Positions 6,221 to 62,180 of a stretch of 64,000 nucleotides of DNA are shown piece after piece; positions within the stretch are counted from its first letter, which is position 1; each line of letters starts with the position of its first letter. This stretch comes from Eukaryota sp. TZLM1-RC. Its lineage: Eukaryota > Protista > Metamonada: BaSk clade. The notes under the pieces were generated by a model, which searched no databases, had not been told where the DNA came from, and saw only the letters and a program-made list of their open reading frames with translations. The stretch is from positions 3,720,001-3,784,000 of the forward strand of contig JAUPSS010000002.1 in the NCBI GenBank assembly GCA_040285825.1. Direction: 5' to 3'. The translations under genes were made by a program, and so were the position numbers.

Positions 6221-6923
6221 TTTTTTTATCAATTTTATTAAAAACCTATAATTTTTTAAAACAGGAATATTTATTGAGAATATTTATTATTTATACCTAT
6301 AAATCTACATCTAAAAAATCCATCTCTCCCAAAACAAAAACACTAGATGCAACTCTCTCTTAGAGAGATCCAAGAGAAAGCAAAGCAACAGAAACCATCT
6401 TCAACATCCCCTTAAAAATAGAAAACACAATTCTATTTTTCCAACACAATCTGTTGAAATTTCTGTTAGTTCTTCACCTTACAATCATTTCAAAATCTTC
6501 CAAAAAACGTATAGCCGTTGGAGCAAGGGAAACAAAAAGAGAAAATACAAATGGATACAAATTGTATTTTACATGCTGTGGACTGGACAATTTGGACAGA
6601 GGTTCATTGTATTTCTTGATTTTGAAATTTTCAGCATTTGAAAGAGGATTATTAATTTCAGAATTAACAAGCCTTTCATTAGAGGCATTACAAGGATCAA
6701 CAGACATTACATCCAATAAAATGAAGGTTCCATCTAATCCAAATAATATGACATCACCTCTATTATTCTTATGAAAATCATCTTCACTATCAAACAGATT
6801 TGACAACAGAGGTTCCAAGAAAGATGCAATTCTATGAGACTTACACATACAATATAATTGGTCTCTTACAGCATCGTGAACCTTACTTCTAAAAGTAATA
6901 AAATGTTTACTATTTAACAAATG
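6221..6923 (-). mobile_element. 5'-truncated RLE retrotransposon family B containing a micro-insertion of the family A1 3' end
   Basis: RSKVHDAVRD..NRGDVI..LDVMSVD. Poly(A) at 6221-6227. 12-bp TSD AATTCCTTAAAC at 6209-6220 and 6924-6935. Confidence 0.9.
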
Positions 6924-7124
6924 AATTCCTTAAACCGCCAACAATCCCACCACCAAATTCTTCCCCGCCCCTACGACTTTCATTCTAGATTCAATCTATC
7001 TAGAGTCTACCAATAACTCTTCCTTTAACATTACCCAGTTGGATATCTCTAAGACCAAATCTCAAAACTAGCCATCTTCGAGAACCACTATCTTCATTCT
7101 GATTTTCTCCCATAGTGACTACTG

Positions 7125-7916
7125 ATGAATCTCCTAGAATGTGATCCTGATATTGATCCTGTTACCACATTGGTAGACATGACTCCCACGTCAATAACTA
7201 TTGGTACACTGCTACTTTTGGGAACTATTCTGTCCACTCTACCTCAACACTTCCGCATCATCAAGAAGCGTTCCTCACATGGTATTTCACCCTTCTTTCT
7301 CTTTTTGGCGAATGTTGGTCAATTTTCTGTGGCCTTGTCCTCTGTGATCTTTGGAATAACTCACCTGGAAGCCTGTAGTATAGTCGGCTTTTGGAAGTGT
7401 TATCCCACAATTCTAGCTATGCTCAATTTAGTAGGTCTTTTTGTTATTTATTTTCCCATAACAGTTCTTTTTTTAGTATTTTTTGATGGAAAAAGAAAAG
7501 AATTCAATCTTTCCGTTACTCTTCTTATAACGTTTTGCACATATGCAGCTAGTTTATTGTTTTTTTCTTTTTATTTATTTAAGAATTATGGTAAGTGTAA
7601 TATTTATTTATTAGAAATTGGCTCAATTGCTGGATTAATTAGTACTGGAATCAATATTCTCCAATTTGTTCCCCAAATAATTAAAACGTATAAATTAAAA
7701 AACGGGGGCTCTTTTTCATTAGCTATGCTGCTAATACAAGCTCCAGGGGCAGCCATTATGTTGTTTTTCCTTATAATATCAGGGGAGAACTTTTCTGTGT
7801 GGTTGAGCTATTTTACGTCGGCTTCCCAGCAATTAATTTTGTTGTCTTTGCTGATCAAATATAGAAAAAATTCAGCACACAAAGGTGATCCACCTTTGCT
7901 GACGTCAATACAGTAA
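7125..7916 (+). CDS. PQ-loop (cystinosin/PQLC2-like) 7-TM transporter
   Basis: Two PQ motifs (TLPQHFRIIKKRSSHGIS; FVPQIIKTYKLKNGGSFS) and about seven hydrophobic helices. Confidence 0.85.
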   Translation: MNLLECDPDIDPVTTLVDMTPTSITIGTLLLLGTILSTLPQHFRIIKKRSSHGISPFFLFLANVGQFSVALSSVIFGITHLEACSIVGFWKCYPTILAMLNLVGLFVIYFPITVLFLVFFDGKRKEFNLSVTLLITFCTYAASLLFFSFYLFKNYGKCNIYLLEIGSIAGLISTGINILQFVPQIIKTYKLKNGGSFSLAMLLIQAPGAAIMLFFLIISGENFSVWLSYFTSASQQLILLSLLIKYRKNSAHKGDPPLLTSIQ

Positions 7917-13123: not shown

Positions 13124-13199
13124 TGTCAACAGAAGCTGTTTAAAACAAGTAAAGGGCTATGAATTAATTTCTATCAAAACACATTTCTCGCTTTTGAAA

Positions 13200-13362
13200 A
13201 AAATTTATTGAATTTGCACACTTAATTAAATTTACTCATAACTAATGGGACGACTATCATTCAACCAAGATTTCCTCTACAAAATCTTGATCTGCTTGCT
13301 GTCTAGCTAAAGCTTCTCTTATTCGATTGAAAAACCGTGATAATCTATTGATAATGGCAAAT
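13200..13362 (-). mobile_element. 3' fragment of RLE retrotransposon family C
   Basis: Near identical to 25725-25885 and to the reverse complement of 62020-62180. Confidence 0.85.
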
Positions 13363-13390
13363 ATCGCTTTTGACCAATTCATGCAATCTT

Positions 13391-14112
13391 TTTTTTAAAT
13401 TTTAATTTTATTCAAAACCTATGAACCAACATCCAAAAAATCCATCTCTCCCAAAACAAAAACACTAGATGCAACTCTCTCATAGTGAGATCCAAGAAAA
13501 AGCAAAACATTAGAAACCATCTGCAACATCCCCTTAAAAAAAGAAAACACAATTCTATTTTGCCAAAACAATCTGTTGAAATTTCTGTTAGTTCTTCTCT
13601 TTACAATCATTTCAAAATCTTCCAAAAAACGTAAAGCTGTTGGTGCAAGTGAACCAAAAATAGAAAATACAAATGGAAACAAATTGTATTTTGCATGCTG
13701 TAGACTGGTCAAATTGGACAAAGGTTCATTGTATTTTTTGAATTAGAAATTTTCAGCATTTGAAAGAGGATTATGAATTTCAGAATTAACAAGCCTTTCA
13801 TTGGAGGCATTACAAGGATCAACAGACATTACATCCAATAAAATGAAGGTTCCATCTAATCCAAATAATATTACATCACCTCTATTATTCTTATGAAAAT
13901 CATTTTCAGTATCAAACAGATTTGACAACAGGGGTTCCAAAAAGGATTCAATTCTATGAGACTTGCACATACAATATAACTGGTCTCTTACAGCATCATG
14001 AACCTTGCTTCTAAAAGTAATAAAATGTTTACAATTTAACAGATGAGTAATTGTAATTTCTCGAGAACATTTACAAATTAAATTATGAGGTAAATTATCA
14101 GGCCAGATAAAG
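13391..14112 (-). mobile_element. 5'-truncated RLE retrotransposon family B
   Basis: ORF pieces 14120-13743 and 13721-13419; poly(A); 16-bp TSD CAATTCATGCAATCTT at 13375-13390 and 14113-14128. Confidence 0.92.
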
Positions 14113-14128
14113 CAATTCATGCAATCTT

Positions 14129-14275
14129 GATAGATGTTAAGCTTACTTTAGTTCTATCACTATATGATCTCACTATCAAATGATAGTTAAAGCAGCAACA
14201 TCACAATACGCATACAGGTACGCAATACATGGAAAAACACTTATCTACGGGGTCTCCGGAACGCTTCCGGTCTTT
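14129..14275 (-). ncRNA. Candidate Fanzor omegaRNA region (3' end of ORF plus downstream flank)
   Basis: Position expected for TnpB/Fanzor omegaRNAs. Hairpins CCGGAA-cgc-TTCCGG (14256-14270) and ACTATC-aaat-GATAGT (14172-14187). Boundaries are unknown. Confidence 0.35.
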
Positions 14276-16161
14276 CATTGTGGTAGTGCTCACTTATGGC
14301 AATCTCCAGTTGATTTCTGGAGGCTGAGATGTCCCTCGACCAGAGTGTCTGACATTGATGACAAACAAACTTATCATTGTTCACCCTCCCATCATCGTGA
14401 TACAACTTTTGATTGAATACCTTACAGCAATTCGTTTTGGTAGATGTGTAGAATTCATCTCCATTAGGTTTCACATATGTAAAATGTTTCTGAATCTCCT
14501 TCAAAAAGCACTTCCTTGGGGTTTTCACAGATTGTCTTGATGGCCCATCACCTCCACTGCCAAACCAAATTATGGTTTCTTTTCCACTAGCTATTAGTTT
14601 AATTCTTTTCAATAAATCCCATTATTCTTTTTTGGCTTCTTATAAAAATAAAAAATCAAACTTATTGCGGCGCAGGACTCGGCGATGTACATTTATCGGC
14701 AGTTGGTCTAATATAGTTCTCGGACGGAGGTCGGGATTCCTGATTTCTTCCTGTGTCGGTACCCATGCCTTTAGTGTTGCTATTTCATACAGATATTCGC
14801 GGAAATTCTTAGCAAAAAAGCAATTTGGTTATGCATGGGTCAAGACCGGTGGTTGAATGATCTTCTTTGCCTTTGGATTTAGAACAAGGCCCGAAAGTTG
14901 ATGGTCAACATTGTTATTATCTCTTCTTGATCCAATTGAATAACCAAACAAATTTTTGGGATCAATTGCACAAAATGAGTATTCAATTGGATCAACGGGA
15001 AGAGGCTCGTAGGTGTCATCAGTTCTTCGACGTTGCCTACGACAAACCTATTGTTGACGTCTGGAGTTTCTTTCGACTCTCAGCAGGTAAATCGTCTTCC
15101 CCATTGGCTCTGGCGGTTACCATTTTTCGGGCTGTGTGGCGATTCTTGGTTTTTTTAAAGACAGTCAAGAACGTTGTTCTCACTGATATACCGTCCGATG
15201 CAATGGTAATATGTGGAAAAGTTCTTCCTGTTGAAATTTTTGAATGGATTCCTCAGAAATTATTGATCTGGGTTTAAACATAAGAAGTGTCGTTCCAATG
15301 CCGGACTCAGTGCAATTAAGCCAGGGGAGTAACTTGCGGAAATAGCTAGAGCATGCCTTTTCATTGTTTCACTCGCCATGTTCTCGAGGAAGGACAAACT
15401 ACGGAGGCCGACGGAGAAGATCAAAGTCATCGATTCAACGTTCAGTTGGATTTCAGTCTCTTCTCAGAGGGCATGGAAGCTAGCAGGGTCACCTACTTGT
15501 TGTTAAATATATCAGTCATATAAGCATGATGTTGCTCATTCCAACCAAATAGTTCTGAAAAACGGCAGCAGTATGTTCTTTTGGAGCTGGACAGTCAAAG
15601 AAGATTGCCATTGTTTCATAGAGGTTAAGCTTCCATACAACTGAACCATCTGTCATAATTTGACTGAAGCTGTTTGTTACTTGAGGTGCGCAAAAGCTCC
15701 AGATGTCAGAATGACACCAGTTGTCAGTCATTTATCTAAACCCAGAGGGGGAAATGGCCACCTGGTTGGGTCAGAAGCGTGAGAGAGAGCCTCGTAGACC
15801 TCTTGGTGGTTCTCAAAAGGTCGTCGGACTGGAATATTGACCATCATCACACAGTTCTGACATTGATACCAGATCTGTTGATGGTACAACCAGTGGGCCA
15901 TCTGTGGATGCATCAGTGTATAATACTGAGCAAGACGACATGTCAGGACACTGACAGTTCGTTTGCAACGAAACTGTCGCTCCATTGCATCTCTTGCAGC
16001 ACTAGCAAAGAATTTGGTAGTAGTAGTAGCAACGGTTGTCTTTTTTTCAGGACGCTTAACCTCCCAAGGGAGTACTTGGCCTCGACTTTTATGTACTTTG
16101 TTTCCTTTTTGACAGTGTTAAAAATCCGACCAGTCGAAAATTTTTTGACCCAATGGCCCAA
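14241..16161 (-). pseudogene. Fanzor1-like (TnpB-derived) RNA-guided endonuclease, disrupted by stops and frameshifts
   Basis: Manual minus-strand translation gives, in order: TIASDGISV (about 15181-15207), RuvC-I FCAIDPKNLFG (D at 14961-14963), bridge-helix-like RRVLRRNKFDF, IIWFGSGG, DEFYTS (E at 14454-14456), CC..CHQC zinc finger, RuvC-III WSRDISASRN (D at 14331-14333) and terminal RPEAFRR. Confidence 0.85.
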
Positions 16162-16809
16162 CAGTTGTTTCTATATAGGTATAGTGTTAGTTCAATATAG
16201 TGCATTACTTATAGAATTGCGCCTCTGGGCTGAAGGTGCAAGATATTGAAATGTTTTCATACTAGCTTACTTTATTTCCTCCTATGATTACCATATTCCA
16301 AATATTTGGCCCGAGACGTGATTCAATTTGAAATTATTTTGTTAACCTCCTACTTCCCTGCATTTACCATTATCATGTTTACTGTGATTTAGCCCATCAC
16401 AAAAATCATTATGTAAAGGTTCCGTTAGTTGTGACCGAGTTAAGACCTGATCTATTTCCTATCACAAATGAGTCGTAACAAGAAGAGGAAATGTCTTGAT
16501 TTGTGAGTTAACATTTCATAAACATCAATATTTTGATAGTTGATATGGATTAAAGATGCACAATCGATTACTTGATAAGGTCTTTGATAAGAGAACTTTT
16601 GGGTCGGCAATTGAGTTATCTTTTTGTCTTGATCTTATCATTATCCTTATCTTGAGATATTTATTTGTTAAGAATTATTGGATCATCACATAATCAATCA
16701 CTATTTAAAGTTTGCAAAAGAAAATACCATTTTATTTATACGCAATACCACATCTCGTGCAAAAAAACATTGTATCAATGTAACAATTGTGAAAATCAAA
16801 AACATTGAC

Positions 16810-18389
16810 CTAGCAAGGTTCAGTGGTACGCTGGGAATCCGTATCTGGAGCTCTAAAGAACCCAAGCATGCGCCTCGTTACCTCAAACCCTCCAACTAGA
16901 TTCACTGCTAGCAATAGAATGGCAAATGACGCTAATAAACCTACAAGAGACCAAGGATCGGCAGCTCGTGACAGGACTATGAACCCACCAACTAGAACAA
17001 GGCCAGTAATGGCATTTGTAAGACTCATAAGAGGTGATTGAAGCCCGACAACCACCCCTAAAGTGACATAGACTCCAGCAATTACACTGAGAACAAATAG
17101 CAGAAACTGTCTTAGGAAATCCAAACCACCAGCAGTTCTATGGTTAGGACTTTGAACGCAACAAACCGTGGAGTGGCCACAGCCAGGCCAGACAAAGCTC
17201 CAAGCAGTAGTGCAATGATGAGAAAAAACAATGCATCAGGACTAAGATATCTTCGTTTGACTAATGGTGGTTCCACTGTTTCTACTTTAGACTCTTCTTG
17301 AGCAGGTGCTAAAGGCAATGGTGGATGTTCCACTGGACACCCCTTCTTGACGATAATCATTCTGCCTATGACCGGATTACAGGGATCCATGTTGAATAAA
17401 CAAACATCGCCAGGAGGATCATCACCAAAGGCTTTCAATATTGCCACGACATTTGCACTATATAATTCACTAAAGTAAGTTGCTTTGAAATTTCCATACC
17501 TTGCCTGCGAAGGCATTCTTCTCGCTATATTTGTATCCCCTATCACTAGGATGTTTCTCCCCACGTCAACTGTCTCGTCTGGTACAGTCCCCATACAATT
17601 TCCCCCAGATCCTGCTGCCAGGTCCACTATCACTGCTCCCGAAGGCATTCCCTGCAGTGCATCCTCAGTTATCAAGAGCGGAGCGGGTTTGCCTGGAATA
17701 GCAGCAGACGTCACAACCACGTTAACATCTCTCATTTCTAAAGCAATCAGTTCTTGCTCTCGTAAAAGAAAATCTTCCTCCAGCTCTTTAGCATAACCTC
17801 CCGTCTCTGAAACCTCAATTCCCATCTCTATGAACTCTGCCCCCAGAGATATAACCTGGTCTCGAACTGCTGGTCTCGGATCAAATGCTTTCACATTGGC
17901 CCCCAACGCTCTAGCTGTTGAAATGGCTTCCAAACCGGCAACCCCTACCCCAATTACAAATACAGTAATCGGCTTAATCGGCTGGGCTGCAGTGGCTGTT
18001 TGCATTGGAAAACGTCCTAAAAGCTGAACAGCTTCTATAACACTGCGGTAACCCGCTACTTTTGCTGTAGAAGTTAAAGCGTCCATGTACTGAGCAGCTG
18101 TGGTTCTAGGGACTGATTCAATAGCGCAGACAGTTGAGCGTTGTTGTATCATAGAGTCTAAACGTTGAGGATATTGGTATTTGTAAATGAATGAAACAAT
18201 TCCACTGCCCTCTGGAAGTTTCTCAACTTGGTCTTCGGTGAGTGGATTTATAGAGATGATGACAGCATTCTCTGTTTCATCAGCATCACCAGAAGGAGGA
18301 GAGATGGGTATTGTATGGGAAGAAGGTGCATCGGGGTAGATATCAAAGAGTGAAGGTTGATCATCTTCATCAACTTGGTTCTCAAACAT
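16810..18389 (-). CDS. pntA: NAD(P) transhydrogenase alpha subunit (dI plus membrane dIIa), stand-alone, 2 introns, about 506 aa
   Basis: VPRTTAAQYMDALTS..AGYRSV, VIGVGVAGLEAI, GGYAKE, AAIPGKPAP, DLAAGSGGNC and LQSPLMSLTNAITG..NLVGGFEVTRRML. Introns 17470-17499 (30 nt, restores QASELY) and 17138-17166 (29 nt, joins the two ORFs). Confidence 0.9.
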
Positions 18390-24312: not shown

Positions 24313-27062
24313 AAAACTGGAATAATTATTGAGATAAAAAAACCCATCTAGAATTCAATATCCTCCAAACATGCGTCACTATTACTGAACCTACTTACAG
24401 CATTACGTTCATATTCTACACCAATAGCTAAAAGTGCCTTTGAAATCTTTGTTTGAATAGACTTGAAAATGCAAAAAACAATTCTATTTAACCACAAAGT
24501 GGAGTTCATTGTTTTATTAGACCTATTCAGTAACACTTTTTTGAAATTTTCAAAAAAGTGCAACCCTGAAGGTCCAATATTGCCAAAAAGAGAAATTGCA
24601 AACGGCACAAACTGATAATTCACATGTTCCACTCTACCTAACTGTGCCAAAGGTTCTTCATATTTTTTTATTTTCTTTTTTTCGGCGTTAGAAAACGGCG
24701 AGTCAGCGGAATACACTAAACGAGCAACAGAATTTTTGCAAACATCAACTGAGACAACATCTACAACATTGAGAACACCATCGATCCCTGGAGCTACTTA
24801 ATCTGCCCTTCTTTTACCAAAGGAATCATCAGTTTGATCTGAAGACAGCTTACGTACTAGTGGCTCAATAAATGCCTCTATATTGAAACTTTTGCACATG
24901 GCATATAATTGATCACGAACTGAGTCATGAACAAGTGAGCGGTTAGTTATAAAATACTTACAGTTTACAATATGGGAAAGCGTAACAACAGTCTTGCAGC
25001 GACAAATTAAATCATTTGGTAATGAACAAGGCCATAGAAAACATCTCATTCTCATTGCAGTGGTCCATTGGTGATCATTAAGTAGAAGGCCATAAATGTT
25101 GGGAATTTGGGAGATTAGGCAACTTGAGCAACTGTCTTCAAGATCAATCAAAAAGTTTGCAAAAACGGGATTTTTTTCCTTAGCCAAGCTGAGACGTACA
25201 ATATAATCCAAGTTTTCTAAAACTTTCAAGATTTTTTTCTGCAATTTTACAAAAGTCAGTGGTAAGGAGAGCAAGCTTCTTGAAGGAAGTTCCACAATAT
25301 CAGAGGGGAAACATTTAGTCCAAATATTGGGTGAAAGAGTTTCAATTTCCTGTTGCAATGAAATAAGATAAGAGCTACCGCAATTTTCAATGAGATGATT
25401 TTTTTCAGGAAAACGATTCACAAATTCAAAAATAAAATTCTTTCCACCTCCAATAAAGGCAGCTTTACAAAGGTAGCTTGATTTATGAAAATCAACACCG
25501 CCAAAATTTGTACCACAAAAAATGTGGCTTCGTAACTGAGATGCATCAATTTCCAATAATTTTGCTAAAAAATTGGTTCTTTGTTCATTAAAAATGCGAC
25601 AAAACTCCAAAGAAATTGATGGTGATGTTGATCTCAAAATATGAGTAAATTTTCCAGAATAACAGATTTTTAAGAAAAGAATTTCAAATATTTCTCAATA
25701 TTTAAATTTTCTATTGATTTTTATTTATTTATTGAATTTGCACACTTGATTAAATTAAATCATAACTAATGGGACGACTATCATTAAACCAAGATTTCCT
25801 CTACAAAATCTTGATTTGCTTGCTGTCTAGCTAAAGCTTCTCTAATTCGATTGAAAAACCGCGGTAATCTATTAATAATGGCAAATTGAATCCGTGAACG
25901 CCATAAAAAATATCAAATCTTTTCATTGTTTTTTCTTTCACCATTTTTTGGAAGTCATCCAAAAAGTTTCTGCTTCAACTGATAATCTTCCATTTATCGA
26001 AAATGGAAAAGCAATAAAAACCAGCTGTGTATTTCTATCGATATTTGCATCTTCAATTTCTTTATCATATTTTCTATGTTTTTCTTTTGCTTTAAAATCC
26101 AGAGCAGCCACAGGATTAAGTTTTTCTTCTGTGAACCAAAGTATCGTTTGCAACATTACATGAGACAAAGTCAACAATAGCTTCAGAATTATCAATCCAA
26201 TCACAGTATACATCACCTCTATCATCAGAACCAAAATTATTCAGAGAAAGTGTTTCTTTCAGCAGGGGCTCTTTGATACACGATATCCTTGCAGTTTGTG
26301 CCATATTGAAAACAGTGTCTCTAACAGCATCATGTAATGAAGAACGATAAGTTATCAATTTAGAGCAATTTAGAGCATGGCGCAAAAGTGAGTTGAGGTG
26401 AATTCGAACAAATACATTTTTCTTTTGATAATAATTGGTTAATGGGGATGTTCAAATATAATCTCATTTTTGTTACAAATGCTTCATTAGTAGCACACAA
26501 TCCAAATCTTCGTGGTACAATGGTTACAAAAAGTGAAGAATCTGACACCTTGTTTTCACAAACACCCTTTTCCAATAACAATGAGTGAAGATCTTGATTT
26601 AAAACAGCCGAGCTGCAAATATTATTATAAAGATCTTTTTCATACATTCCAGTCAATCTTTTTCTGTAATGTTCGAAGAGTGTACTTCAAATTTAAAACA
26701 TTTTTTTCTGGAATATTGCCATTGAATGATTGGGGAAAACATCGACCCCATTTTTCTACATCAATTCTTGAAATTTCTTCATTTAATGCAAAAACAGTGG
26801 AACTTTGCGTTGTCATCAATAAATCTTCCCAATCTGCAAATCTTTCGGAGAACTCAAAGATTGCATTTCTGCATCCACCAACAAAAGCACACGAGGTAAG
26901 AATAGAAGCCTTCGTCCACCCTAAACCACCATATTGTGGACTAAGGTAAGCATGATCTGGAATTTGAAACATTCCAGAATAACAGATTTTTAAGAAAAAG
27001 AATTTCAAATATTTCTCAATATTTAAATTTTCTATTGATTCTAATTCATTTCCAAATTGAGT
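24313..27062 (-). mobile_element. 5'-truncated family A1 copy interrupted by a nested family C insertion
   Basis: 24313-25719 and 26972-27062 are highly similar to 1860-3285. Confidence 0.9.
25720..26971 (-). mobile_element. 5'-truncated family C copy nested in the A1 copy, with a 68/69-bp duplication of the target
   Basis: CICSNSPQLT..HALNC..RSSLHDAVRD..DRGDVY..IVDFV..KHRKY. Duplicated flank at 25652-25719 and 26972-27040. Confidence 0.9.
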
Positions 27063-39224: not shown

Positions 39225-42200
39225 ACGTTGTTCATTTGCTTTGACCGAAGAAGATCAAGTAGTGAAATGGGGTTAGGGAAAATCATTTGAAATAATTAAA
39301 GAATTAACTAATTCTGTTTTTATTACTGTGCATGATGATTTCTCTTGTGGCAATTGATGAAAAGTTAGATTTCTGCAATGTTTACACAATTTATGACAGC
39401 TCTCAGTTTGTTCCGATAACTGCTACCATCCAAGTAAGTTCTTATCTTTATCTAAGACTTCGCAAGACTTCTCAAGACTGCTCTTTGTTTGATCGTGATT
39501 GTCTATTTGTTATTGATACTTTTGGCACCTTTTGGTAGTTTCAAAGGGGGAATGGTGGTTGTTTCAACTTTGCACCCTCCAAGGTCGAAAGATTAACAAA
39601 TGATGTTTTAATCACTGGGAAAAATGACAATCACTACACCAGTGAAGTCAGTGCTTAAACAATATATTGAGGTTACTGATTTCTTACATTCTTAAAAGAG
39701 TTGGTTGTTTTTTTAATATGTCGATAACAATCTTTAATGGATTTTTTTTAGGATAAATTTATTTTCAACGCTAACAAAACATTAAACAAAAAACTAGAAC
39801 TCAATATCCTCAATACACGCATCAACATCATCAAATCTTTTAAGCGCGCGATTTTCATACTCTATTCCTAATTGTAACAGTGCTTTGGTCAACATTTCTG
39901 GAATTGCTTTAAGAATACTGAAAACAATTCTATTGTGCCAGAAATTGAAGTTCAATTCTTTTCCTGCTCTTTCTTTTATTAAACTTCTGAAACCTTCAAG
40001 AAATTTAATGCCAGATATTCCAATGTTACCAAAAAGAGAAACAGCAAATGGAACCAACTGATACTTAACATGCTCAACACGTCCTAGCTGAGATAAGGGT
40101 TCATTGTACTTTCTGATTTTGCTCTTTTCAGCAAAGCAAAGTGGAGTTTCATCTCTTTTAGCAAAGTCAATTGCTGAGTCTTTACAAACATCAACAGTGA
40201 CAACATCAACAACTTTAATAACACCATCAGACGCAGGGGTAATTAAATCAGCACGGCGTTTCCCAAAAGTATTTTCATTTTCATTTTCAGATGACAACCT
40301 TCGCACAAGTGGTTCAACAAAAGCTTCAATGTGATGGCTTTTGCACATAGCGTATAGTTGGTCTCTAACAGCATCGTGAACAACTGAGCGATATGTAATA
40401 TTAAATTTGCAATTAAATAAATGATTCAGATTAATGAGCTGACCACAACGACAAATCAAATCATTTGGCACACTACATGGCCACAGGAAACACCTCATCC
40501 TGAAGGCAGTTGTCCATTGATGATCATTTAATAATAGACCATATACATTTGGAATCTGGGAAATAAGACAACCTGAGCTACTATCCTTGAGGTCAATTAA
40601 AAAGTTTGCAAAAACGGGATTCTTTTCTTTAGCCAAGCTAAGACAAACAGTGAAATCCAAGTTTTCAAAAACTTTTAATATCTTTTTCTGCAATTTAGCA
40701 TATGCAAATTTCAAGGAAATCAAACTCCTGGGTGGAATTTCTTGAATATCAGCAGGAAAGCATTTGGACCATATGTGAGGAGAGATGCATTCAATTTCAC
40801 TCTGCAAGGACACTAAATAGTCACTAACACAACATTCTATCAAATGCTGGTTTTCAGGAAAACGTTTCAAAAATTCAAAAACGAAATTTTTTGCTCCACC
40901 GATGAATGCGGCTTTACACAAATATTTTGATTTGTGAAAATCCAGGCCTCCCAATTCTGTGCTACAAAAAAATATGACTACGTAAAAAGAAGAATCAATA
41001 TCGAGCAAATTAGCCAAAAATTTTGTTCTTAATTCATTAAAAATTCTGCAAAATTCGAGAGAAATAGATGGTGATGTTGATCGTAAAATATGAGTAAATT
41101 TCCCTGAATAACAAATTCTGAGGAAGAAAAATTTAAGATGTTTTTCAATATTTAAATCTGAAAGAACCATCAATTCTTCTTCAAAATTATCCAAAAGAGA
41201 GGAAAGTTGATTTCGAATTTCATCAAAGTTGCCTAAATAACAACCTAAAAAACGAAATCCTGATTCAAAATAATTGATAAAAGGAACACTTTGACCATCA
41301 ATAATGAAATCAGCAGGCTCTCTACCAATCAATAAACATTTGGAAATATTTAGAGAAAGACCAATTTCATAATAGCGCTGTTGAACAATTTCAGCAATTG
41401 TTCTCAATGAATCAATTGGACCAATTATTGATATGTCATCCATATAAGCAGTTATATGAACATCTGGAAATTCTTGTTTTAATTCACACATTAAAGGATG
41501 GATAGCAAGACAGAAAAAGAAAGGACCTAATGGATCACCTTGTTTGACACCAGATGATGATATTAGATTGAATTCCTCATAAACAAGAGTTGACTGTGAG
41601 CCATAAAAATTGTAAAAGAACGACTCAGCTTCTGGAAAATGAGTTTGAAGCAAGGGCAAGATGGACGACCTCTTCACTGCATTGAAAGCGTTTTTAAAAT
41701 CCAAATTAAAAATATAATTCGAAGTATTGGAATTAAAAAAGACATCAGAAGAGAGTGCTGCAGAAGATGCACCATCAACTGTTTTAATTCCAAATTGGAA
41801 AGGACTAAAAAAATCTTTAGCCTTTTTACCAATCCTGCCAAACACAGCTGAAGCAAGAATACGAGACAAAGATTCACCAATTGCAATTGGCCTTATTTTT
41901 GATTCATTCTTTTTTAAAGCAATTAAGCGTGAACTTGTCATTTCAGATGGAAGCTTGATTTTTAATGTTAAAATTTTGTTGAAAAAGAAAACCAAATCAT
42001 CAATACATTCAGGACATTGGTTTATCGTGGATTTTAACATGTCAAAAGTGATCATTGATGGACCAGGCGCTTTTCCAGATGGTAAGTGGTTTATCAATTT
42101 AATTAGTTCATCATTAGTTACGGGATTTTGCTCCCAATAACTTAGATTATTGGGTTTAGGGCACTTAAAATTTTCAACAGGATGGAGACTCTTTAGTTGA

Positions 42201-43700
42201 GCAACAGTATTTTCATTACATTCTGCAAGTTCAGAGGAAAACAGGCATTGCTTAGCGGAACCATAGCGTCCCTTTAAAGCTAATTTTCGAACAATTTTTT
42301 CTTTCTTCATTACTGAAGGACGAAATTTTGATTTTGATGACAATATTTTTTTATCTTTAAGCAAAAAAAATTTCCATAGCGGTGTTACATCCCATATGCC
42401 TTTTTTTAAATTGGTGGTAAATTTTCGAAAACTAATTGAAAAGGGAGAGGACTTACCTGTGATGGAACACGTATTGGAGGCCTCAAGGAATCAACAACTT
42501 TACATGATTCGCAAAAACGTAATGGTCGGCCAGAAGAATTAATGCCCAAATTTTTGGTACAAAATATACACTTATTATTCGGAGAATCAATGGATAAATT
42601 TATAGGTACTATTGCTGGTATTTCTTGATCAGAATTATCATCATTTATGGGTAACGAAGAGAGGGATTGTTTCAAATCAGCAGATGCAGCACGAGCTTTT
42701 AATTGTTCTTGTTTTATTTGGGGACATGTTTTAACGTTATGTCCCGGTTGACGACATTTGCCACAACTCTGAGAATGAACTTTTCCAGTTTTTAATGGTA
42801 ATGGTTTCATTTTTTCAGTTATTTCTATTTTGTCAATTGGTGAGTTAAAGGTAGAAACAGATTTTTGACTTTTTCCGATTTCAGCTGGAGCAAACAAATT
42901 TCGAGAAACGGAGTTGTTTATAGAACGCGCAAAAGAACGTAAAGATCGTAATTGTGGTTTTTGTGAGTTTTTTCTGGTACAATGATCAGTTTTTGAATTG
43001 AAATTTTTTTGAGATGAATTTCGAGCACAGCTTGTATTGTGGGGAGAGTGGAGAAGTGAAGATGATGAGCTTGGTCTGACTGGTAGAATCTTTACTCGGG
43101 CGTTCCAATCAGTATCAGAGTCACTATCAGCCAATGGCATCGTTTTGACAGAGAAACAGTACGACTTTGACGCCGTGACAGAAAGTGAAATATGAGAGGG
43201 TTGACCAAGGGAGGGAGAAAAAAAAATCTTAAATGATCTTAAATCTTTAATGGATCAGATCATCTTTCATCATTAGATCTCAGAAACTATTTTCAATATA
43301 AAATTGTTTTACCTGAATTTTATTTTGAAGTTGAAAGGTAGAATTGTGGAGTTCTCCCAGTATTGAAGTACAATTGCCAAACTTTAAGGAATTGATAATT
43401 CATCGCTCAGTTCCTACCAATATCACTGAACAATATTTTCCTTCTTTGGAATTCATTCAATTGATTGAACCTACAAAGGCAATTTGTTAGATTCTCCCCT
43501 TTCTCCAGTAGAATTTGTCAACAAAGGTTTAATTCAATCTGCCAAAATAATCAAGAATGAATTATTAATTAAATTGTCTGGTTTTCCATGGTGGATTCAG
43601 TATTCAGCTGAAAAGTATATGATTGATTTCTTTCGTAAGTATGAAGATAAACATTGCGTTGTTCAGAGATTTCATAAAACTTAGCTTGAAGATATTCTAG
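39225..43700 (+). pseudogene. Decayed RCC1/LRR gene copy split by the full-length A2 retrotransposon
   Basis: 39225-39742 and 43290-43650 are homologous to the reverse complement of 23565-22000. Confidence 0.6.
39743..43226 (-). mobile_element. Full-length, nearly intact CRE-clade-like non-LTR retrotransposon, family A2
   Basis: 43140-42406 (CGKCRQPGHNVKTC; CIFC..CESC) plus 42364-39794 (RT with YMDD, CCHC, RRADL..VVDV, KIRKY). Poly(A). 14-bp TSD AATCTTTAATGGAT at 39729-39742 and 43242-43255. Confidence 0.96.
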
Positions 43701-61759: not shown

Positions 61760-62180
61760 ATACTTTGGTCCACAGAAGAAAACTTAATCCTGTGGCGGCT
61801 CTGGATTTTAAAGCAAAAGAGAAACATAGAAAATATGATAAAGATATTGAAGAGGCTAATGTCGATAGAAATACACAGCTGGTTTTTATTGCTTTCCCAT
61901 TTTCGATAAATGGAAGATTATCAGTTGAAGCAGAAACTTTTTTGAATGACTTCCAAAAAATGGTGCAAGAAAAAACAATGAGAAGATTTGATATTTTTTT
62001 ATGGCGTTCACGGATTCAATTTGCCATTATTAATAGATTACCACGGTTTTTCAATCGAATAAGAGAAGCTTTAGCTAGACAGCATGCAGATCAAGATTTT
62101 GTAGAGGAAATCTTGGTTCAATGATAGTCGTCCCATTAGTTATGAGTTAATTTAATTAAGTGTGCAAATTCAATAAATAC
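61760..62180 (+). mobile_element. 5'-truncated family C copy
   Basis: Ends DFVEEILVQ*. Possible 10-bp TSD TTTACTTAAA at 61748-61757 and 62186-62195. Confidence 0.88.

Follow-up and report, generated by a model that had tools for sequence, protein, structure and literature searches.

General features of the locus

The window, a 64,000-nt stretch of DNA from strain TZLM1-RC, carries on its minus strand a broken Fanzor1 gene, followed by a putative omegaRNA region split by two LINE fragments, the right end of a mobile element, and a co-oriented host gene. The strain, which we take to be Skoliomonas litria, is a free-living anaerobic metamonad. The Skoliomonas assembly listed first in Table 1 of PMC11316075 comprises 31.9 Mb in 16 contigs, with 55% repeats. 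Element loci were examined in 12 fetched loci (L001 to L012) and in the window. The features of the window locus are as follows.

14241-16086 (-): Fanzor1 pseudogene; frameshifts near 15729, 15559, 15503, 15208, 15069, 14644, and 14604; stops near 15464, 15260, 15048, and 14829; no ATG
15160-16086 (-): 5' half (REC/WED), second subfamily type; nucleotide identity 54-69% to L008, mostly 78-83% to L011
14241-15159 (-): 3' half (RuvC, bridge helix, TNB zinc finger); nucleotide identity 83-97% to the intact subfamily (L008)
14961-14963 (-): RuvC-I Asp codon, with a two-codon deletion straight after DP
14559-14561 (-): Gly at the canonical RuvC-II Glu position (IIWFG)
14454-14456 (-): alternative RuvC-II Glu (DEFYTS)
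14352-14429 (-): TNB zinc finger, variant CC-x20-CxxC
14331-14333 (-): RuvC-III Asp (SRD)
14113-14240 (-): 5' part of the putative omegaRNA scaffold, 94% to intact copies
13391-14112 (-): 5'-truncated CRE-like LINE fragment with an A-rich tail, in the omegaRNA region; 16-bp duplication 14128-14113 / 13390-13375
13198-13363 (-): second LINE 3' fragment; 10-bp duplication 13373-13364 / 13197-13188
13157-13197 (-): terminal part of the putative omegaRNA and element right end, a mutated family end motif; last base 13157 or 13166
13142-13156 (-): host flank of about 15 nt in the upstream region of the host gene, the would-be guide (PMC10432273, PMC13565253)
12233-13123 (-): host ZMYND12-like gene, co-oriented, with its ATG 34 nt past the element end

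Frameshift-aware alignment with the intact sibling P0117 shows that the window copy covers residues 9 to 637 of the sibling colinearly, with seven frameshifts, four stops, and the ATG gone. The read-through protein, which carries an X at every break, has 617 residues, compared with 637 in P0117. An earlier note on this DNA had described about 640 codons under stops and frameshifts at 14241-16161. The lesions are present and the boundary at 14241 holds, but the codon number was too high and homology begins only at about 16086, the TTG ORF at 16161 lying in another frame. In addition, the gene but not the whole element lies within those bounds, since the element runs about 1.1 kb beyond 14241, to about 13157. 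Some of the frameshifts could be long-read assembly errors, and the exact locus is covered in public reads by only a few short contigs.

An unclassified repeat at 16313-16538, 74% identical to L007:13102-13332, bounds the Fanzor on the 5' side and is unrelated to it. A PntA-like transhydrogenase alpha subunit spread over two ORFs (16810-18389, minus strand) lies directly upstream of the element. The window also contains many LINE fragments from at least three CRE-like families and a near-complete CRE-like LINE (39743-43226, minus strand) with an 856-aa ORF encoding a reverse transcriptase plus endonuclease.

Fanzor1 identity of the window copy and its family

The window copy is a Fanzor1, and it is dead. 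The reading of 16086-14241 on the minus strand as a broken Fanzor1 copy is highly probable as a whole, a confidence that covers identity, dead status, and element anatomy and not the mobilizer. All of the landmarks listed in the earlier note are present on the minus strand in the same order, and the three catalytic acids are still encoded where it had placed them (Asp, 14963-14961; Glu, 14456-14454; Asp, 14333-14331). The copy has a split TnpB-type RuvC, a D-E-D triad, and a C-terminal TNB zinc finger, and it belongs to a multicopy mobile element of a eukaryotic host. The RuvC-I motif of Fanzor1 is typically DPG, and DPN in SpuFz1. DPN is also found in the intact siblings; in the window copy the next two codons after DP are deleted, which removes the counterpart of N385, the Asn that acts as a metal ligand in SpuFz1 (PMC10432273). 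The Fanzor1 zinc finger was defined by a Glu six residues ahead of CxxC...CxxC. In the family, all four cysteines are conserved, with the first pair adjacent (CC) and 9 to 10 residues past the Glu, which constitutes a clade-specific variant.

The stop-free C-terminal piece (14621-14244) matches the Pfam family Cas12f1-like_TNB above the cut-off (E = 4e-6), and six upstream pieces matched no relevant Pfam family. Searches with the relatives' proteins (tblastn) recovered the upstream pieces colinearly within the window and found no second Fanzor there. Among 1.84 billion representatives, the C-terminal piece retrieved nine proteins at E ≤ 1e-10, the best with 70% identity. Eight of the nine were looked up and are all from Eukaryota sp. 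TZLM1-RC, TZLM3-RCL, or GEM-RC1 (Skoliomonas), whereas proteins from outside Skoliomonas score E ≥ 1e-6 with about 30% identity, in agreement with the divergent clade suspected earlier. Word-indexed homologue searches, which are of limited sensitivity, returned Skoliomonas proteins only, and in a quick tree the Skoliomonas proteins cluster apart from three outsiders. Atlas neighbours of the family are TNB/DUF8286 clusters, mostly from giant viruses. The window copy belongs to a large, Skoliomonas-specific Fanzor1 family that is apparently unreported.

The genome contains intact copies, as the earlier note had anticipated. S. litria has several Fanzor subfamilies with 44-48% identity, whose annotated members form clusters of 17, 18, and 28 and include intact ORFs; intact siblings are 632-637 aa long, and those of L008 to L010 are 97% alike. 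Because natural intact copies exist, the consensus protein proposed for a cleavage assay is unnecessary.

A PDB sequence search with the 126-aa tail alone gave nothing significant, and a family profile was therefore needed. The profile matched, in order, SpuFz1 (E = 1e-19), PpFz1 (2e-8), a Cas12f-like protein, and GtFz1 (4e-6). In Fanzor1, the canonical RuvC-II Glu is replaced by Gly or Pro, and an alternative Glu stands just before the zinc finger (PMC10530073, PMC10711439). In a second profile, DPN, the Gly that occupies the canonical Glu position, the alternative Glu, and RD line up with their SpuFz1 counterparts, with WFG and DEFYTS aligned to MGD and DEYKTS.

The AlphaFold model of P0117 had a pLDDT of 81.6 and a pTM of 0.72. 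Its seven best matches by Foldseek and VIA, a comparison that had been suggested, are all Fanzor1 structures (Foldseek E values of 7e-12 to 9e-8; VIA Z of 17.3-20.3, rmsd of 4.9-5.7 over 457-517 residues), although the identity is only 11-14%. The next best match had a Z of 13.3, TnpB had 10.1, and Fanzor2 had a Foldseek E value of 9e-3. The predicted structure of P0117 has an enlarged REC/WED lobe and is nearer to Fanzor1 than to Fanzor2, TnpB, or Cas12. An earlier model, that of P0008, was poor (pLDDT 55), and Foldseek still put SpuFz1 first. The family profile, the SpuFz1 alignment, and the sibling model therefore agree on a Fanzor1 with a rearranged RuvC-II Glu, as had been claimed. Membership in Fanzor2/IS607 was rejected on the length of 637 aa, the Fanzor1 fold, and flanks without the serine recombinase TnpA.

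Right end and putative omegaRNA

Alignment of copies gave a sharp right end. In four sibling copies, near-identity extends about 165 nt past the stop codon and breaks off abruptly after ...GAAATTCACAG. The end motif TGCAT-N6/7-GAAAWWCWCAG or a variant of it terminates elements of nine families in two species, and it is common to two Fanzor clades unrelated to the window family. In a third, divergent clade (L009:4594-6488, minus strand; VDLG, SEFNTS), an 11-bp duplication accompanies the motif. A very different Fanzor1 from Skoliomonas TZLM3-RCL has the same right-end motif; the ORF upstream of it encodes a Ulp1/C48 protease together with a 2A-like StopGo motif and, as judged by eye, a stretch resembling a PolB exonuclease (L002:1758-4733 and 51-1631, both on the minus strand).

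The last five to eight bases of the element are predicted to pair with an upstream segment in eight of the nine families, and in two families CUGAG:CUCAG stands in place of CUGUG:CACAG, a compensating change. The shuffle test gave a summed P of 0.001, with single-family P values of 0.04-0.25, and the fold of the window subfamily alone is weak (z = -1.6). A terminal stem has been described for Fanzor1 RNAs (PMC10711439). The families thus appear to share a conserved, structured 3' region that reaches the element boundary and is predicted to close with a terminal stem rather than a pseudoknot. Rfam gave no credible match for the 3' region.

In the window, this region is interrupted by 915 nt (13198-14112). 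Related copies were found in contigs of two public DNA runs, one of which joins 14113 to 13197 and skips the 915 nt, and L003 also spans that junction, in an alignment at 91% that reaches 13166. The skipped segment consists of the two LINE 3' fragments, and the 16- and 10-bp duplications beside them are exact. The fragment at 13198-13363 ends with AATAAA and a run of T on the coding strand, not with an A tail. A 15-mer in a LINE endonuclease coding region of the window (61864-61878, plus strand; 26025-26039, minus strand) matches the subfamily right end at 14 positions, probably by chance.

Position relative to host start codons

At 9 of 16 independent sites, a same-strand host ATG lies within 50 nt of the right end, compared with a background of 1.3% of positions and 1 of 36 LINE ends, in a sample that is small and non-random because annotated proteins guided the choice of loci. 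For the first 14 sites, the figures were 8 of 14 versus 1 of 36 (Fisher's P = 4e-5). The insertions favour a zone 20-60 nt upstream of host start codons in this small sample. In L011, three element ends are apparently stacked ahead of the start codon of a kinesin gene; a second Fanzor element there (L011:11880-13523) interrupts the putative omegaRNA of the first one. Both LINEs of the window locus landed in the same promoter-proximal zone as the end of the Fanzor element, which shows that the locus is a record of repeated insertion into one such zone. A search for orthologs of the host gene in other Skoliomonas gave none, so that no empty site could be read.

The proximity to start codons may reflect survival. 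Insertions would persist if they spared the short core promoter of a gene in a compact genome or, alternatively, if they supplied read-through transcription and a CAG splice acceptor. The element end qualifies as a splice acceptor, and CTCAG is the terminus of the best candidate host introns; two further full-length copies have instead their left end 47 and 63 nt from a divergent ATG, and additional inserts have accumulated within the same 30-60 nt, all of which is consistent with survival. However, the LINEs are under the same selection and have no such bias, and survival as an explanation seems rather doubtful.

Domestication would be another explanation, with guides from host 5' regions letting the Fanzor bind and regulate or mark promoters in a TldR-like manner. 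The guides would derive from promoter-proximal DNA, and the copies are many. However, the catalytic acids are whole in most full-length copies, the copies are young, dispersed, and often broken, and constraint is modest, with 14 silent and 17 replacement codon differences between L008 and L009. We consider domestication very unlikely.

Mosaic structure

The two halves of the window copy have different relatives. Overall, identity to the main subfamily is about 60% in the 5' half and over 90% in the 3' half. Identity to L011 is about 80% in the 5' half and 84-93% in the 3' half; informative sites favour L011 over L008 by 242 to 76 in the 5' half and L008 over L011 by 60 to 21 in the 3' half, with the switch point at 15150-15200. 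Two kinds of REC/WED half thus appear, from these alignments, to be combined with one kind of RuvC and RNA. The TAM is read by REC and WED (PMC11423790), and a REC/WED swap may therefore change specificity. L001 was dropped as a second mosaic; its two copies, 98% alike, form an inverted duplication of a Fanzor and an RBBP4-like WD40 gene (L001:51-9345).

Left ends and mobilization

In contrast to the right ends, the left ends differ between copies and are ragged or C-rich. Duplications starting at the first flank base occur in four copies (three exact, of 13, 13, and 11 bp, and one of 13 bp with a single mismatch), compared with 0 to 1 of 40 nulls, and a fifth, of 7 bp, lies beside a full-length left end. 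Most copies, including that of the window, have no duplication, and the left end of the window copy is undefined because the search for its duplication gave nothing above chance. The bases left of the duplications (TCTC, CCTC, TTCT, TACC, and ATTG) reveal no single TAM, and extra unique DNA separates some left duplications from the shared element. The right ends abut unique flank, with neither an A-rich tail nor a copied guide at any of them. Full-length copies of one subfamily, 99% alike over 3.7 kb, start with a tandem ATTCCC repeat (L007:7590-7640 and L012:8226-8276), which is telomere-like and not the host repeat. In two copies, the left duplication stands at the 3' end of an antisense ORF inside the copied segment (L009:8248-8966 and 6744-7178).

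The search for associated transposases proposed earlier found none in the 12 fetched loci, and TIRs were also absent there; no HUH, DDE, or recombinase gene was found in any fetched element. The "Fanzor-bearing transposon" of the earlier note is therefore a mobile element, but a non-autonomous one. A DDE cut-and-paste type (Spu-1, Mariner, hAT, MuDR) was rejected on the ragged or C-rich left ends and the duplications of 0-13 bp. The fixed 3' end, 5' truncation, and variable duplications are those of Helitron2-type elements; a RepHel-encoding Helitron sharing the ends, ATIRs, and a TTTT target were not found in the 12 loci plus the window. By analogy with the proposal for CRe-1/2/3 of Chlamydomonas, an HUH rolling-circle enzyme is our first choice of mobilizer, with a probability somewhat short of even.

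A less probable alternative is that the elements are SINE-like passengers of a CRE-like LINE reverse transcriptase that starts at the structured omegaRNA end. A fixed 3' end, a variable 5' end, and duplications of 7-13 bp are the classic TPRT signature; LINEs are abundant and left the 16- and 10-bp duplications at the window locus, and template switching would account for the mosaics. However, the right ends lack an A-rich tail and a copied guide, LINE 3' ends dock at start codons in only 1 of 36 cases, and the equivalent pattern in Chlamydomonas is linked to Helitron ends (PMC3627910). Formal membership among LINE-mobilized (SINE-like) elements was rejected on the tailless right ends and the different LINE 3' ends.

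It is rather unlikely that the elements move without any transposase, with the Fanzor making a staggered break at a part-matching site and host repair copying the element from its right end. The duplications start exactly at guide position 1 and are about as long as a guide seed, no transposase was found in the 12 loci, and Craig 2023 proposed Fanzor cutting behind such duplications in Chlamydomonas (PMC10288648). However, guides do not predict new sites, because the flanks of sibling copies have little in common apart from an initial T; known Fanzors cleave at a distance from the TAM and not at position 0 (PMC10432273); and an end motif common to unrelated Fanzor clades fits a shared trans-acting enzyme. 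A mobilizer other than an HUH enzyme, a LINE, or Fanzor-made breaks is improbable.

Proposed mechanism and significance

In intact copies, the region behind the ORF would be transcribed into an omegaRNA of about 165 nt, the last bases of which close the stem, and the 632-637 aa protein would bind it. The guide would be supplied by about 15 nt of host flank, and RuvC would cut DNA with a TAM and a guide-matching sequence; such RNA-guided cutting is inferred from SpuFz1, PpFz1, and GtFz1. If the guide comes from the host flank, the target would be the element-free insertion site, which, once cut, may be repaired from a filled copy, that is, by homing (PMC13565253). The empty site would offer the full target, whereas the left junction of a filled site would retain the TAM and no more than 13 bases of the target, probably too few for the 15-bp duplex observed in active Fanzor1 states (PMC11423790). 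The element, which has no transposase of its own, would be copied in trans, starting at the fixed right end and proceeding leftwards. The end pattern is observed, and right-end-first copying would produce ragged left ends, occasional duplications of 7-13 bp, and subfamily hybrids. Frameshifts, stops, and the insertion of two LINEs into the omegaRNA region later inactivated the window copy.

In a more far-reaching version, which is fairly unlikely when its parts are taken jointly, this would be a transposase-free, promoter-seeking system in which the nuclease is itself involved in insertion, its cut defining the 11-13 bp duplication from guide base 1 onwards, a single RNA end common to unrelated Fanzor clades is recognized by the mobilizer, and REC/WED halves are swapped between subfamilies to alter TAM specificity.

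Fanzor1 and the one-ended insertion pattern are both already known. In the full-text literature outside subscription journals, we found no paper on Fanzors in metamonads and no report of Fanzor start-codon targeting. If the promoter bias reflects active targeting, it would be of a kind for which no report was found in the Fanzor family. Skoliomonas can be cultured and carries many young copies from several clades; their intact ORFs, predicted sharp RNA ends, and duplications marking pre-insertion sites make the TAM, guide, and insertion mechanism directly testable. The family also adds compact candidate editors with about 13% identity to the solved Fanzor1s. The dead window locus is a fossil of a family worth assaying, a record that fixes the element end and shows a REC/WED-for-RuvC mosaic.

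Comparison with known systems

The Skoliomonas family resembles SpuFz1 (8GKH), PpFz1 (9CF0), and GtFz1 (9CER) in the predicted whole-chain fold, the Gly and alternative Glu, the RD, the zinc finger, and a structured 3' RNA that lies behind the ORF and ends in a closing stem, as predicted for Skoliomonas. It shares the DPN of RuvC-I with SpuFz1. It differs from the solved Fanzor1s in sequence (11-14% identity), in its CC-x20-CxxC zinc finger, in a longer putative RNA, and in having SDG, SDA, or SNG where their WED domain has TDG. Spu-1 has 30-nt TIRs and a TA duplication, neither of which occurs in the Skoliomonas elements.

The MCi-2 Fanzor1 elements of Mucor circinelloides (PMC3627910) match in part, with duplications of 11-12 bp, no TIRs, and near-identical 3' parts on different 5' parts; their fixed duplication pattern and partial Crypton recombinase were not seen in Skoliomonas. 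The closest precedent is CRe-1/2/3, the non-autonomous Helitron2-type Fanzor1 elements of Chlamydomonas reinhardtii (PMC3627910). Like the Skoliomonas elements, they lack a transposase, keep their 3' ends intact, and are often truncated at the 5' end; some but not all copies have duplications (7-19 bp in CRe), and extra sequence has been captured on the 5' side. The Skoliomonas elements differ in having an intron-less ORF and a strong bias to host start codons, with no Helitron partner or ATIR seen and no fixed TTTT target. Promoter-proximal targeting with a bias in distance and orientation is found in compact genomes for Dictyostelium TRE5-A and yeast Ty3/Tf1, which are autonomous retroelements without an RNA-guided nuclease, with TRE5 and Ty3 acting at Pol III genes. 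The Skoliomonas insertions, too, tend to lie just upstream of genes in a compact genome.
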